Assembly (NCBI RefSeq): GCF_963853765.1
Contig: NC_088860.1
Span: 30,194,001-30,258,000, forward strand
Direction of reading: 5' to 3'
Length of the DNA: 64,000 nt
Source: Magallana gigas
Taxonomy: Eukaryota
Shown one piece after another: positions 2,018 through 9,295 of the stretch. Position numbers and translations under genes: made by a program. Numbering within the stretch: position 1 is the first letter of the stretch; every line of letters starts with the position of its first letter. The notes under the pieces were generated by a model. The model made no database searches and had not been told where the DNA came from. It saw only the letters and a list, made by a program, of their open reading frames with translations.

Positions 2018-2413
2018 TTATGCACTGTCTACTGTCATGAATCTGTTGTGTGGCAGGGATTGGACGGTGTTGGCTTCTTCGATTTCTGTATCTGGGTTTG
2101 GTGCACAGTCTCCCTCTTCTTCTTCTAGGATGGAATAGCGGTTTGATAAATTAATTGATGAATAGAAGCTACAGGGTGGTGATGATATAGGCGATGATGG
2201 AAGCCTCGAACGTTTTCGTTGTTTGTATGGTGAAGGAGAGTCTCTGGATCTTTTCTTCTGAGCAGGTGTTTTGGTCGATGGCGAAGACTGCGGCGTCACT
2301 GTAGTGGATGGTAATGAGTGAGGAGACAATGGTGGTGACGTGGGCACATGTCTTGTAGTCTTTGGTAGTTTAGACTCCTTAGTCTTTTGTCGAGGAGGCG
2401 ATGGTGAAACATC
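2018..2413 (-). pseudogene. C-terminal Ser/Pro-rich half of the OTU/vertnin-like ORF interrupted by the 2414-8627 insertion
   Basis: Encodes DVSPSPPRQKTKESK...LSNRYSILEEE...DSA*. It continues in frame from ...FDQRVFE (ending at 8628) once 2414-8627 is removed. Its first ~40 aa are a diverged copy of the repeat at 8650-8760. Confidence 0.7.
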
Positions 2414-3219
2414 CATGCCAAGAAATGCCGTCCGGTTTAGAATAAGCCTAGCTAACGGTCTTCAATTATACACTTAATTAAGGTCAGCCGCATTTGCTTG
2501 AAAACCCGCAATAAGGGATCGAGCCGAACTAAAGTTTCAGAGATTTGGGTCAGCGGCTGTTTACGACAGTCTTTAGAGTGCCAATGTTTATAGCTTAGAG
2601 ATACGTGTTGGGATAAGAATAAAAAGGACACAAGCTAAGATTTGGAAGACAGACACTTTGTAATTAAAAAAAATAATTATGTGATTTTCCTCTTTTACTT
2701 ATTCATCGTCTCCATATTGTTTACACTTGGAAACACAATCTCTAAGAATTATTTCTCTCTGAAATACAGAATGTTATGTTTTGTTTGGGGGGTTTTTTTT
2801 TTATAAACCTAGCATTTTTTAAAAAATTAAGCCGATATACGTACATGTAATATTGATGTACGTCATGTAAAGTGTTAAATACACGGGTATCTTTTTTGTT
2901 AAGAGAGTTTTAATTAAGGTATGGCTAACTAACCTTGTATTAAAGGAACTGAAGAAATTTGAAATATTCAATCGGATGCAAATGTATGACCACCGCAGGG
3001 TTTATTATTATGCGATGTTTCATATAATAAATGTTACATGAAAGTTTATAGCGTTAATTTTTAAGGTATGCTGTAGAATGTATATAACACTTTTTTATTG
3101 TTAGTTTTGAATATATTTCGTTAAACAGACACTGCACCGATCAATTATCTGTATTGGTGGGAAATCCGAAATGCAAAAATTCTGGTAAACCGGTAAAAAC
3201 TAAAACAAAAGTTGTAAAA

Positions 3220-6200
3220 ATGTCGAATTTTTTTCGACCATGGGTGGAGACACGGCCGGCTGTACCTGTGCGTAGACGTGTAATGTTGCCGTTGAATAAC
3301 AACATGCAGGTACGTAACTACTTGTTTATGGATGATTCATAGTGTAGGTGATCAATACATTAAAGTTACCCACTCAGTAGAATGATAACTATAGGCTATA
3401 TTTTAGCAAAAAATTAAGCCGAAATACTTATATAGTGAATATGCAGAATTTATATAAAAGTCAATGTATGTGTATTTGACAAATTTATGTTGATATTGTA
3501 TGTCATGTCAGTTATTGAAGCTTTATAATTTTTTTAATTTTTATTTCACATGCATATTTTATTGCAATAGGACCACGATGATATGGAAAATAAGAAAACT
3601 CCACGCAAAGTAAAAGGATTTTTTGAGCTGAAACATTCTCAAAGAGGAGAAAGGAAAAGAAAATACCAAAGCGCTTTTCAAGAAGCTTCAAGCTGTGTTC
3701 ACAGTGATATTTCCTCCATCAAAGTCCAGTTCAATTTTGATAATGGACATGTTTTATCCTTTTTTCCCCGCAAAGTGTCCCCTGATGAAAATGCTAGTTT
3801 GGAAGATGAAGGTGTTAAGAAATCTCAAGATCTTGCTGTAATTCAACAGGTTATTGCAGTTAAGGACAAGTTCAGAATTTCTGACGAAGCTTTACATGAA
3901 CTTCATATGATTGGTTCAATAATACCAAGCAAGTCAGCCATCAATACAGAAAAATACCGTCTCAACACAACTCTTGAAATAATGAGCCATCCAACAGTAA
4001 GTACATGTACCGTGCTTTTTTATGTGTTGACCACTGACTTATTTAGCACGTTTTATTATCTTATCATTTGAATATCAAATTTAGAAACCGATCGATCATA
4101 GCACAAGCCAATTTACTTTTATTTATTTTTTTAACAAAGGCAGACTGCAGTACTAGAAAGCTAGAGCACATTCTAGAGTTTGTACTTCAACACAAAAAAT
4201 ACCAGAAGTATATTGAGAATGACACTGTTACCCTGCGTTTTTCCTGTGATGGTGCCAAAATTGCCAAAAATATCTCCTCAGTAAGAGGGGTGTTCAAGAT
4301 TTTGGCACCAAGACAGTCATTGCCAGATAAGCTTGAAGATTTGAGCATGTGTCCAGAAGATGAGTTTACTCTTTTCTTTTACATTGGTGAGAAACTTTGT
4401 ATTTATTGAAATTTCCTGTCATGTATTTTGGAATTATTATTTCGATTATCACATGTTTATTTCAATTAAGGAGATGAAAATCGATGCAGTTTAGAGGAAT
4501 ATGCCTCTGGGACATTAAGAGACATGGAAAATGTTCAATTGAATGGAATTGTAATCAATGGAAGAAAAATCTCTGTAAAGTGGTAAAGTTATCTCATCAT
4601 CTACGGTTATCGTTTTTTTTATTCTATACCCTATTTGTTATTATAATATCATTTCAAATTCTAAACTGGTACAATTATATATTTTGTAGGATAATGACTT
4701 GTGATTGGAAGGCACTTGCCTTACTGAGGGGAATTAATGGCGCTCAATGCGAATTTTTCTGCATGTGGTGCCACTGCTCCAAAAAGCAGATATGCGATTT
4801 CAGTAGTAAGTAACTGTTGTAAATTGATAAAATGATACAAACATTGTAATAAAAACAATAGCAATTGCTGGACAACTAATGTGATTTTATAATGTTTTTT
4901 GTAGTCCCATCTTGGTTGATACAGAGATCTAAAGAAGAACAACAAACTGTTCTAAATTCTGAAAAGAAAACGTTCGGGTACAAAGATACAGATCTCTGCC
5001 CTTTCATTTCATACCATGACATGCCCATTGATGATCTTCACATGCGCATAAGGATTTCTCTAAAGCTCTTCAATCAGGTACATTGTCTCTTATTAATATA
5101 CACGAATGTATACTTTTAACGACTCTGCTAACTATCTGCATACACAAGATCTCCTTGCTTGATTTTGACAATTTTAAATTCAGCTTGTGACCTGGGCAAT
5201 AGACCAGAAATCTGAAGACAATTTGAAAAGAGAACTGAAACGCGTAGGTGTCAGTTTCAGAATGTGGGAGGAAAGGGGGGATGACAAATTGAACACCAAA
5301 GTGAGGAAATGGTCTCAACCAACAGGTATATATATGCCTTTCTTTAAAAAAAAATACTATAAGTGTTTGCAGTTCTTGTAGCAAATCTTCTGAAAAATAT
5401 TTGCCATTTCATTTGTAGGTGATGATTTACGTAAAATTATAAGAGACGTTCAAATCCATCATATTCTGGACAATAAAAAGGACAGGCACTACGTATCAAT
5501 AGAAAGCCTTTCAGTACAGCAGTTGAGGGACGAATTAACTAACAGACAGCTTTCCAAAAAAGGAAAAAAACCCGAACTTGTAGCCCGATTAAAAGATGCT
5601 GTCGGAAATAACACTAAGGTATATTTACAGAAACTCAAATTCACTGAATAACATTTATATTTCCTGAATGTTTACATAGTAATATAAAACTTTTCATTCA
5701 TGTTGTTTTAGATGAGGAGGAATGTAGGCTCTCGTCTTCAGGTATCGTACGACTTTTCAGAAGATGAAGAACAGGACCTGGACGTCGCAGCCCTGCAAGA
5801 TCTGTGGTCAGGTTTCCATACGCTCATGGAAAGTCTCCGGGCATTACCTGGAACAGATAATTACAAAGATATGGAAACTTTTGCAAAAGAAGCAAAAGAA
5901 TGGGCCACTGAATTTCGAAAGCAAACCTTCGATGAAGATGTTATCCCATACATTCATGGTGTGTAAAAATGTTAAAGATTCTATAAAGGAATCATACAGC
6001 CTATCCCTACTTCTTTCAGGGTATAAAATTCATTTTGTTTAAATTACATTTTCAGCTATGGTTTATCATGTACCACAGTTTCTGCAGACATACCACTACA
6101 TACATGATATCGGGGTTGCCCAAGTTGAGCGTAAAAATTTTGACCATCGTCAAGCGTACTTTGGAAGCACCAACAGAAATGGGTCCAAATGGAAAAAACA

Positions 6201-6425
6201 TGTCTCAAAGCAGGTACATACCATTATTCAGATAGTCAATCTGCTTGATTTGTTTCACAAATTTTTCTGCCTTCTGCAATGAATAATTAATCAAAGATAA
6301 ATATGCATTTCAGTCCTTGTCATACTTGTGATCTTTAATTACAGATTCTTGAGAGGGAAAATAGAATGCTTTGGTCCAGTCTACATGGAACTGTACGTGA
6401 AAAAAGAAAATATGTAAAGTCTTAA
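3220..6425 (+). CDS. RAG1-like (Transib/Chapaev/RAG1 clade) DDE transposase, 663 aa, 11 exons, with inserted SAP domain
   Basis: Exons 3220-3309, 3571-3996, 4140-4386, 4471-4582, 4690-4805, 4905-5077, 5184-5325, 5419-5618, 5712-5958, 6056-6213, 6345-6425. All introns are GT-AG and phase-compatible; 1992 nt with no internal stop. Motifs: FSCDG (D, 4248), TCDWK (D, 4703), CMWC at D+19/+22, IDDLH, PYIHAMVYH (H-x4-H), AQVE (E, 6127) at H+20. These spacings equal mouse RAG1 D600/D708/C727/C730/H937/H942/E962. RKVKGFFELKHSQRGERKRK resembles the nonamer-binding-type helix. The first ATG choice (3220) is inferred. Confidence 0.88.
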
Positions 6426-8473
6426 ATACCGTCGTTTAGCTACAGTCCCAGTAACCATGTTTCTACGAGACCTTGTAAAAGTTACATGAATCCATGATGG
6501 ACCACGAACATACAGTATTACAGGGTCACATAGCTGTGGTCGGTTCTCCTCGGCATCTTTCCATGTGCATCTAAACAAAGATTTTTATAATGAAGCAGAT
6601 CTTTATTATTATCAAGCAATATTTATTAAGAAGCCCACAAAGATGAACAAATATTGTATTTCTATGTATAGAAATGTTGTTTTTTTATATTAGAATAATA
6701 TTGTATCACACTTTTGATATTATTGTTATTGTTTTTACTATTACAATTAAGTAAATAATGTATAAAATTGATGTTCCTTATTGCAATAATATTGTATCAC
6801 ACATTTGTTATTATTATTGTTTTTTTTTAAATTAAGTAAATAAACATTCACATTGGATTAAATTTATGTAATCATACCTTTTACAATTATTGTGTTGGTA
6901 TTGCTTTCTCTCCTTATATCCCCACCAGACATGAATAAATTCTTTGAAGGAGACAAATGTTTCTGTTGATGTTTTGTAACATCTATTTGACCAGTTCTCT
7001 CCAATGGCAGAAGTCATTTCTTCACCTGTAAAAATAAACATAAATTACTTAACAATTATTTTTAGTAACCGAACACTTGCATTCCAAGTATGTCTTTCAA
7101 GATACCTCCTGTCTCCACTTGCATGGGACCAAAACTTTAAATAGACTTGTCATATGCTCAAGAAAACAATTATCATAATATTGCTTCAGATAGTTCATTA
7201 CCTGTGAGGTAGAAATCCACATTTCCATTGTCTGTTGGCAGAGTATCCATCAAAGACCTGAAGTATTTATTAAAACTTGCACAAGAAAAAGGCACTTTCA
7301 CTGTTGTCCTCGACTGGATGCCTAATGCACCATCAGGTGTACGGCGTGCATCGCCTAAACTGTCAAAGATGGCCTGTCGCAGTGCCATAATGTCATCAGG
7401 GTTGTTCCTGCAGTCTATTTTGTTGGAATCTAAATTCCTGCGGTGAAGATGACAAGAGAGGGGGTTTCCTTTATTTCTTTCAATGAATTGCTGCAATTCC
7501 TGGTTTCCATCTAAACTGACCCAGGTTGATGGTCCCTCCCAGTCCTTCCATTTTACTAGCACTTCTTGCTCCCTCCTCTCTAAAATGTCTTCAATCTCCC
7601 ATAGTTTCTGAGATAAATTGTTGAGAATAGTTTAAAACATGAATGATTATTCTATTATTGTTTTTCTTAATTAGTTTGGATAATTCATAATTTTTCCCGA
7701 TGTAGGATATTCGTGATCTAAGAGTGGCGCTAGATCCGCCTACACACTTTGACTGAGATTTGTATACCTGCTTCAAATAAATATAAATAATAGTCTAATA
7801 TAGTTCTAAAATACACATAAAGGTAGATCAAAAGGGAACCCTAACGATATTTAACGATCGCAAACCATAATATATACATAGATATGTCTATACATATTAT
7901 AAACATCATCAGGGACTTGTACTATGATTATTACAACTATTCTTAGAAATGAATATGTTACAAAAGTTTAAATGTAAGTATATACGATATTTGTATAATA
8001 ATATTTATTGTTATACTTTCATGTTAAATACTGAAATCTGATTGGTTAAGACGCAGTTAATAATATTTTCTATTACCCTCAGCGTTAGCAACGCACTTAG
8101 CAACGGGTAACATTAAAAAATGTTACATGCGCGAAAATTATGCGCGTACGGTTCGCTGTAGAATTCACGTTATTCCTATATAAAAGCAGTAAAATTTTCT
8201 TAAAAATTAAGACATTCAGTATAACAAAATAAATAGTGCCTGTTTGGGAGGATAACAGTTGAAATTGACACCCCTCGAAAACCATTGTCAACCTCCGCTT
8301 CGCGTCGGTTGACAATGGTTTTCTCGGGGTGTCAATTTCAACTGTTACCCTCCCAAACAGGCACTATTTATATAGTGTACCTCTTTCGACTTGTTCTCCT
8401 TTAAACTTCTAAAATTTAAATTTTCCTCCCAATCTCCGAATCTTACAGGGGCTCTTCTCTTTCTCTGTGCCAT
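6381..8473 (-). CDS. Chromodomain-containing partner protein, 256 aa, 4 exons, convergent with the transposase
   Basis: Exons (minus) 8473-8447 (MAQRKRRAP, donor GTAAGA), 7607-7202, 7025-6878, 6570-6381. GT-AG introns with phases 0/1/2 consistent; 771 nt open. N-terminus KLWEIEDILERREQEVLVKWKDWEGPSTWV matches the chromo fold pattern. The remaining ~200 aa are unrecognised and include HNNCKRCTW...LC. Confidence 0.8.
8002..8372 (+). mobile_element. Non-autonomous element ending in a ~143-bp palindrome (family A), inserted in intron 1 of the chromodomain gene
   Basis: 5' TTATACTTTCATGTTAAATACTGAAATCTGATTGG; 3' hairpin ATAAATAGTGCCTGTTTGGGAG...CTCCCAAACAGGCACTATTTAT (8229-8371). Relatives at 37628-37856 and 38458-38630. 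Superfamily (Crypton-like or Helitron-like) not determined. Confidence 0.8.
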
Positions 8474-8627
8474 TTCTTAGATAAGAATGCAGCTGAAGAA
8501 AGCACACAGGGAGCTCGATTTCACTTAATCGGTTCATCGCCGTGGTAACGCTGACCGCCTGGGATGTGGTCACTAATTTATAACGGGGTTGTGAAAGCGG
8601 AATTTTGGAGCAGAATTTCTTGGCATG

Positions 8628-9295
8628 TTCAAACACACGTTGATCAAAAGTAGGCGATGGCAACGAATATGGAGACGATGGTGGTGATGTACGCACATGC
8701 CTCGTTGTTGTTGTTACCTTGGATTGTTTTGTCTTTTTTCGAGGAGGCGAAGGTGATCTTGCTGATTTGGGTGTTGATTTGTTCCCGCGGCTAATTTTGA
8801 AGCTGAAGTTGAACTCCCTCCTGTCATTGTTTGGCACAGACGATGTTGATTTTGATGGCACGACGGGAACAAAATGGTTGGGTGTCCACTGCTTGTTTGG
8901 TTTAGGTGGCATGGTACTGGTCCACATGATTTTAATGGCAGTGTCACTGATGGGATCCTCGGGTGACGTTTTCAAGTTCAACTTTTGGAAGGCCAGGTCT
9001 TGAGTACCATTAACGCATGGGTAAAGTATTTCCATAGGCACGTTGATTATGTTGGATAGTGCAAGTATGGTCCAAACACATGAATATTGTCTTGGTCGGG
9101 CACACTCCTTGTTTAAAGCGGTGTCATATGTTGGCGAGAGACTAGCCCGATCCTTGTGTTGTTGGATGTTTTCTTTGTTGAGGAACATCTCCAAGCAAGA
9201 TTTAAAACGTAGCTCTGTGGCCAAGGACTCGTCTCCAACCAACAGCGTTGAAACGGAATTAAAAAGGCAATCAGACTTGGTAGATTTTGTGATGG
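8628..9295 (-). pseudogene. OTU-type cysteine protease (vertnin-like) domain ORF, 5'-truncated and split by the transposon
   Basis: Part of track ORF 8409..9395: SDCLFNSVSTLLVGDESLATELR ... WTILALSNII ... IMWTS ... WTPNHFVPVV. This is the Cys-box/His-box pattern of OTU/vertnin-like domains, but the usual GDGN before the Cys is degenerate. Confidence 0.7.

Follow-up and report, generated by a model that had tools for sequence, protein, structure and literature searches.

The stretch considered here, a 64,000-nucleotide window of the Magallana gigas genome (contig NC_088860.1, positions 30,194,001 to 30,258,000), carries a 6214-bp DNA transposon that interrupts an OTU-like host open reading frame (ORF) and holds two convergent genes between short terminal inverted repeats (TIRs). 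As a whole, the locus is probably best explained by an intact RAG1/Transib-type transposon that inserts without adding, duplicating or removing target bases. The features on which this explanation draws are the following.

2414..8627, plus strand: complete autonomous DNA transposon, 6214 bp; three other full copies diverge exactly at its ends, and empty sites are available
2414..2426, plus strand: left TIR CATGCCAAGAAAT; the identical 13-mer forms the left terminus in the diverged copies L004 and L005
8615..8627, minus strand: right TIR, reverse complement of the left 13-mer
3583..6419, plus strand: transposase gene of ten exons; exon blocks conserved against L004 and colinear with the proteins P0086 and Batillaria P0029
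5499..5600, plus strand: SAP DNA-binding domain inserted in the transposase (Pfam PF02037, E 1e-11), within exon 7 (5406-5621)
6432..7613, minus strand: second gene, converging on the transposase gene; its minus-strand blocks are conserved in L004
8628..9395, minus strand: upstream portion of the split host ORF (OTU-like; 256 codons), ending ...DQRVFE (Pfam OTU E 2e-4, just under the cut-off)
2018..2413, minus strand: downstream portion of the split host ORF (131 codons, then a stop), starting DVSPSPPR

The segment 2414-8627 is a complete, autonomous and recently mobile cut-and-paste DNA transposon, with the outermost C and G of 5'-CATGCCAAGAAAT...ATTTCTTGGCATG-3' as its actual ends. Its TIRs are perfect over 13 bp, beyond which the two ends differ; a subterminal motif, CCGTTATAAATTAGTGA, lies about 41-57 nt inside the right end and is conserved between subfamilies. 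The host sequence runs ...GAAACATC up to the element on the left and resumes with TTCAAACAC on the right. A search of the genome (564 Mb, 29 contigs) returned several degenerate fragments of the element and three further full copies:

L001 2001-7850, contig C6: full copy, 99.3% identical to the window copy
L002 2001-8916, contig C7: full copy, 97.5% identical to the window copy, with a 1.1-kb nested insertion
L004 1501-7267, contig C3: diverged full copy, with 55-80% protein identity in the exons and CATGCCGAGAAAT as its right TIR

In all four full copies, similarity ends exactly outside CATG...CATG, and the flanks—located on four chromosomes—are mutually unrelated. Since the other full copies lose similarity at precisely this point, the element boundaries are not a matter of chance. 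The original prediction had described a clean boundary at 2414-8627 with non-canonical CATG rather than CAC termini; its coordinates proved exact, none of the four full copies ends at a different position, and CATG stands at both ends of each. The element is also found in contigs of independent public runs. A degenerate end-pattern search of the genome gave no further copies and no miniature inverted-repeat derivatives, and the degenerate copies L005-L008 provided no usable additional ends. Among the other genomic matches to the 13-mer, only L004 and L005 have more than 13 nt in common with the element end, and the rest were set aside as chance.

Several observations concern the surroundings of these sequences. 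The element nested in L002 (2147-3260, 1114 bp) has TIRs TATGAGGTGCCGTTTTAATATT, shows a 6-bp duplication (GTTTAC) and comes from another transposon family. A left-truncated, internally deleted derivative of the oyster element lies at L003 4220-5180 (C1), its right terminus mutated to GATGCTAAGAAAT. Directly left of the degenerate copy L005 (300-1200) runs a satellite of about 172-bp period, in which every unit carries a TIR-like CATGCCTACAAAT. The 13-mer further occurs five times on one strand at G000 C9:461103-491721, spaced 7.4-8.3 kb apart, in an apparent large tandem repeat unrelated to the element.

The absence of a target-site duplication (TSD) was assessed by scanning all repeat lengths of 1-12 and all end offsets in the four full oyster copies. 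A direct repeat at the element ends is found in 0/4 copies at any of these lengths, the sole repeats being internal to the palindromic CATG. The immediate flanks read as follows.

Window copy: left ATC, right TTC
L001: left TCG, right ATA
L002: left AAA, right CCT
L004: left ATG, right TTC

No insertion target motif is apparent across the four copies. Collecting the genomic copies and tabulating their duplications, as had been proposed, thus yields four full copies all without a TSD, in line with the predicted lack of a 5-bp duplication. The imperfect 3-bp duplication (ATC/TTC) that had been allowed for the window copy does not hold up and is a chance partial match, as the other copies show TCG/ATA, AAA/CCT and ATG/TTC. 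A 5-bp AAACA repeat near—not at—the window junction was likewise rejected as a TSD: it needs asymmetric ends, is missing in the other copies and conflicts with the host reading frame and the host paralog.

Three of the copies (L001, L002 and L004) sit in high-copy host repeats, which supply paralogous empty sites. For L001, 11/11 genomic copies of the host repeat read ...AAAATGGATCG (GGATCG) directly followed by (A/T)TATGACAGTAAAG, also given as (A/T)TATGACAG; the same uninterrupted continuation is the loose-end consensus at the junction (place 2000) in contigs of four public oyster runs from four studies. For L004, 9/9 copies read ...GGTAAAAATG (AAAATG) directly followed by TTCGGCCTTTAA (TTCGGCC), and for L002, whose host repeat is palindromic, the paralogs align ungapped over the junction. 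Across these three hosts, the empty sites contain no CATG, no duplicated base and no lost base, and hence show a 0-bp duplication. No orthologous empty allele of the L001 copy was found in four public runs, whose reads showed the paralogous empty sites of the high-copy repeat. With ends and flanks read in this way, we have hardly any doubt that the oyster element has CATG...CATG ends and makes no target duplication. The L004 flanks (G000 C3:34755701-34755850 and beyond) belong to a host repeat that terminates with ...TTCGGCCTTTAA in all its copies, the sequences past this point being unlike; the transposon lies 12 bp from the end of the repeat.

The window copy adds a protein-coding view of the insertion. 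As had been predicted, the two minus-strand host frames rejoin, 256 and 131 codons giving one frame of 387 codons. The host flanks carry diverged repeat units, 76% identical, with a period of exactly 135 bp (45 codons) once 2414-8627 is removed; the element entered the OTU-like ORF between two units of this 45-codon tandem repeat. Both this period and a single open frame result only from the exact removal of 2414-8627, and the open frames together with the 135-bp period imply that any bases retained at the site must be a multiple of three. The only paralog of this host, L034, is in register across the junction. An uninterrupted version of the ORF exists as P0167, a protein of 165 residues found in the assembly of a public run: residues 1-69 reproduce the final 69 of the upstream part, residues 71-118 reproduce the initial 48 of the downstream part, and one codon stands between the two blocks. 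The codon count of the expected uninterrupted allele is thus borne out; its junction residue is not, being Val instead of the Glu of the window (...RVF-V-DVS... versus ...RVF-E-DVS...). This is the sole amino-acid difference between P0167 and the window flanks over 118 residues before a frameshift. The window Glu codon is GAA on the minus strand (8628-8630), i.e., the plus-strand TTC touching the right end.

The transposase itself was searched exon by exon, the exons being defined by comparison with L004:

Exons 1-5 (approximate), plus strand: 3583-4002, 4137-4385, 4470-4583, 4691-4810, 4931-5080
Exons 6-10 (approximate), plus strand: 5181-5330, 5406-5621, 5712-5960, 6055-6225, 6342-6419

Apart from the SAP domain in exon 7, single-exon Pfam and PDB phmmer searches gave nothing useful, and an ESM Atlas search with exon 1 gave no usable match. 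A Cys-rich N-terminal 'Chapa' finger is not visible in exon 1, which is not Cys/His-rich. An exon-1 profile built from three sequences, run against 1.8 billion proteins, returned 85 relatives, mostly fragments, including Batillaria P0029 (606 residues). A word search with P0029 led to Mytilus P0086 (631 residues), which matches the ten window exons in order, at 43-70% identity, and likewise contains a SAP domain. In the oyster transposase, this domain sits behind the conserved GDDLRK block and ahead of the catalytic region at the C-terminus. A more distant match, P0057, is the lead member of a family comprising at least 77 proteins that are mostly encoded without introns and have no Pfam domain; the transposase family has no Pfam model. 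P0029 and the P0057 family are homologous over 447 residues (E 2e-12), and through P0029 the window protein is tied to P0057.

An alignment of 55 sequences headed by P0057, here called A2, took over from a single-sequence AlphaFold model of P0029 with a predicted local distance difference test (pLDDT) value of 34. Two catalytic Asp, the intervening Glu, CxxC and HxxxxH are invariant or near-invariant in A2; the last Glu falls below that level, yet is aligned to RAG1 E962 in the PDB search. When the A2 profile was run against PDB sequences, the top 15 matches were all RAG1/RAG1L (3jbw, E 2e-8; 4wwx, 4e-6; 6b40, 1.6e-3), with an alignment spanning RAG1 E662, D708, C727, C730, H937, H942 and E962; no Transib chain was matched in this sequence search. 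The AlphaFold model of P0057 on A2 reaches pLDDT 89.7, and Foldseek places it with RAG1 (E 3e-15, target template-modelling score 0.64 over about 580 columns), BbRAGL (2e-10) and HzTransib (3e-9), with nothing besides these three below E 0.3. The P0057 model hence displays the RNase-H-type DDE core with RAG1-like fold that defines the RAG1/Transib/CMC group.

The window exons carry the corresponding motifs: SCDG with the first Asp, GDEN with the Glu, CDWK with the second Asp, HxxxxH, and VERKN with the last Glu. The spacing CDWK...CMWC is that of RAG1, with Cys at +19 and +22 from the second Asp, and in ...IHG|AMVYH...VERKN the Glu lies at +20 from the second His. The window enzyme is thus very probably a RAG1/Transib-type transposase. 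For fold and catalytic motifs the RAG/Transib frame of reference is justified, the fold being seen on the predicted model of P0057.

The distant relatives also allow for a look at insertion beyond the oyster. Scanning metagenome contigs with A2 gave 79 loci. For two multi-copy P0057-type families of the assembly WLWD01, the ends were set by the loss of similarity between copies, one family running CATATCAAAACC...GGTTTTGATATG and the other CATGTCAAAAAAT...TTTTTCATATG; the relatives' termini are CATATC...GATATG and CATGTC...CATATG. Here, the same base flanks the element on both sides in 15/15 independent insertions, and nothing longer is repeated, which corresponds to a 1-bp duplication; chance agreement of the flanking bases would be about one in four per site. 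No duplication is seen in five relatives present as single copies, whose ends are less certain (e.g., CATGGCAAAATA/CATGCCAAAACA). All copies and all related families examined have CAT at the start of their ends, and ends of the type CAT-R-Y-C-A-A co-occur with 0-1 bp duplications across proteins that are only about 22% identical. A 1-bp duplication in the CAT-ended relatives, next to 0 bp in the oyster, marks the short stagger as a trait of the lineage and no accident of a single copy. The earlier suggestion that the element differs in end recognition or in the length of the staggered cut gains support from both values.

How might such insertions arise? It is rather likely that integration is a blunt strand transfer set by the transposase. 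In this mechanism, the enzyme would release blunt element ends with 3'-OH groups, as expected from its homology with RAG1 and Transib, and each end would attack one strand of the target, at phosphodiester bonds lying directly opposite each other—a 0-bp stagger—in the oyster, and at bonds offset by 1 bp in the distant relatives. With no gap to fill, no duplication would follow.

An unlikely alternative is that the transposase only excises a blunt fragment, which host end-joining then ligates into a pre-existing blunt chromosome break. RAG-type excision, as in V(D)J recombination, leaves blunt signal ends that are handled by the end-joining machinery; ligation would give a 0-bp duplication as well, and the altered codon of P0167 lies exactly at the junction. 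However, three or four of the 4 junctions are base-perfect on both sides, with neither loss nor filler, which is unusual for random breaks, and the strict 1-bp duplication of the relatives (15/15) points to a stagger set by an enzyme rather than to repair.

That the oyster element makes a hidden 1-bp duplication, whose duplicated base happens to coincide with the terminal G or C, appears quite improbable. The left flank does end in G in L001 and L004 and the right flank does start with C in L002, where the terminal base could be reassigned. Such a reassignment would nevertheless make the element end differently from copy to copy; the window copy, flanked by C on the left and T on the right, fits neither version; and coincidences of this kind are expected by chance at about 1/4 of ends.

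Even less credible is that CATG lies outside the element—as a duplicated palindromic 4-bp target, or as a CATG target with duplicated AT, similar to the TTAA of piggyBac—and that the TIR starts from CCAAG. CATG does stand on both sides in all copies, the diverged subfamily included, and a palindrome by itself is indistinguishable from a direct repeat. This reading is refuted by the CATG-free empty sites (11/11 for L001, 9/9 for L004, and the L002 paralogs). Moreover, four retained nucleotides would break the host frame and the 135-bp period, P0167 shows no extra residues, and relatives end in the non-palindromic CATATC. Finally, it is next to inconceivable that the copies are segmental duplications or an assembly artefact instead of products of transposition, since the low copy number (three near-identical and one diverged) that might suggest this is set against four chromosomes, four unrelated flanks breaking exactly at the TIRs, and the presence of the element in contigs of independent public runs.

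Blunt strand transfer by a RAG1/Transib-type enzyme hence remains our preferred explanation, and several points weigh against it. The strand-transfer chemistry and the blunt stagger are deduced from the insertion products alone, and the difference between 0 bp in the oyster and 1 bp in the relatives needs explaining. The only uninterrupted allele of the window site differs at the very codon that touches the right end; this Val might represent a single-nucleotide polymorphism (GTA) or an excision footprint (GTC, which would combine two palindromic nucleotides with the loss of 2 nt). The fold is seen on a predicted model of P0057, a relative of 22% identity, rather than from the window's own protein. 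Also, the placement within the wider group, relative to Chapaev, Mirage and CACTA, is provisional.

Kojima 2025 (PMC12730594) unites EnSpm, Mirage, Chapaev, Transib and others under the name CMCT: target duplications are 2-5 bp long, the ends are mostly of the CA...TG type, and C(2)C and H(3-4)H are the common motifs. The window exons carry the CxxC/HxxxxH motifs and both the oyster element and its relatives have 5'-CA...TG-3' termini, whereas the duplication is 0 bp in 4/4 oyster insertions and 1 bp in 15/15 of those of the relatives.

Oyster RAGL (RAGL-B) transposons have a protostome TIR consensus of CACTWMCAAAC and invariably 5-bp duplications (Martin et al. 2020, PMC7204232). In common with RAGL/ProtoRAG, the oyster CATG element has a RAG1-type fold with catalytic and zinc motifs and two convergent genes between short TIRs; like those of RAGL, its ends start CA and show an A-run around positions 7-12, as in CACTWMCAAAC (PMC7204232). 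Unlike RAGL/ProtoRAG, its third base is T and not C, so that no CAC heptamer is present; its duplication is 0 bp versus the invariable 5 bp; similarity of its transposase to RAG1 is detectable only by a family profile; and the transposase bears an inserted SAP domain. For the convergent partner gene, Pfam gave neither a RAG2 nor a kelch match.

Transib elements have a single gene, ends with a CAC heptamer (CACAATG-like) and 5-bp duplications (PMC7204232 and preprint 10.64898/2026.08.26.747230), with duplications varying from 2-5 bp and being 2-3 bp in some lineages (2026 preprint 10.64898/2026.08.26.747230). The oyster element resembles Transib (HzTransib, PDB 6pqx) in fold, in a DDE core with CxxC and HxxxxH, and in its 5'-CA...TG-3' ends, but has no CACAATG-like terminal heptamer, no 5-bp duplication, and two genes. 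Chapaev has been placed in one superfamily with Transib and RAG1 (Kapitonov and Koonin 2015, PMC4411706); it is recognised by duplications of 3-4 bp and invariable CAC...GTG termini, with TWA for Chapaev3 (PMC4079192). The likeness to Chapaev lies in this animal-wide group and its superfamily placement with Transib and RAG1, while neither the 3-4 bp or TWA duplication nor the CAC...GTG termini are found in the oyster element.

A precedent for blunt integration by a DDE enzyme is given by the Spy elements of the PIF/Harbinger group, TIR transposons that insert without duplication and for which a strict AAA|TTT target is reported. The oyster element shares with Spy that a TIR element inserts without any duplication, and differs in its unrelated transposase superfamily and in having no apparent target motif.

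In ends and duplication the oyster element thus departs from every named member, and because of this it is filed as none of RAGL, Transib or Chapaev. In our reading, it is a variant within the RAG1/Transib/CMC group that is set apart from these three by their described ends and TSDs—a new lineage of the group integrating with a 0-1 bp stagger. In the published papers compared here, duplication-free insertion is not reported for any described member of the RAG1/Transib group. Tentatively, the element might belong to an unrecognised RAG1-related lineage that spans phyla, from molluscs to other marine eukaryotes in metagenomes. Its transpososome would join the ends at opposed or 1-bp-offset bonds, and CAT would replace the near-invariant CAC. 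The mollusc branch might have gained the SAP domain and a convergent partner, maybe a chromatin reader paralleling RAG2.

Duplication length and the CAC end are regarded as near-constant signatures of RAG1/Transib elements, used both to classify these and to argue for the origin of V(D)J recombination. A relative of the same fold with a 0-1 bp stagger and CAT ends shows that target capture and end recognition can be more variable than known, and gives a reference against which the structural basis of RAG's 5-bp stagger can be compared. The TIR search of Martin et al. 2020 demanded a 3-8 bp duplication (PMC7204232), a filter by which elements like the oyster CATG element would be excluded; annotation pipelines demanding a duplication will in the same way miss the oyster family. 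As the oyster copies are near-identical and have intact reading frames, the system is directly testable.

The convergent partner gene of the window element is composed of the following blocks.

Exons (approximate), minus strand: 7428-7613 (chromodomain-like), 7254-7400, 7179-7232, 6868-7029, 6432-6572
Possible first exon, minus strand: 8387-8467

The Pfam Chromo model matches its first block at E 0.05, below the cut-off, and no RAG2 or kelch Pfam match was found in its exons. In P0041, a gene model of another species, a transposase-like part is joined to a partner-like part, and it is this C-terminal part that resembles the second gene.

A last feature is private to the window copy and foreign to the element proper.

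8008..8368, no strand assigned: nested insertion of about 361 bp, missing from L001 and L002

Part of this insertion belongs to a repeat found at hundreds of sites in the genome. The insertion is overlapped by a palindrome (8224-8376, arms of 75 nt), which extends slightly past the end of the insertion.

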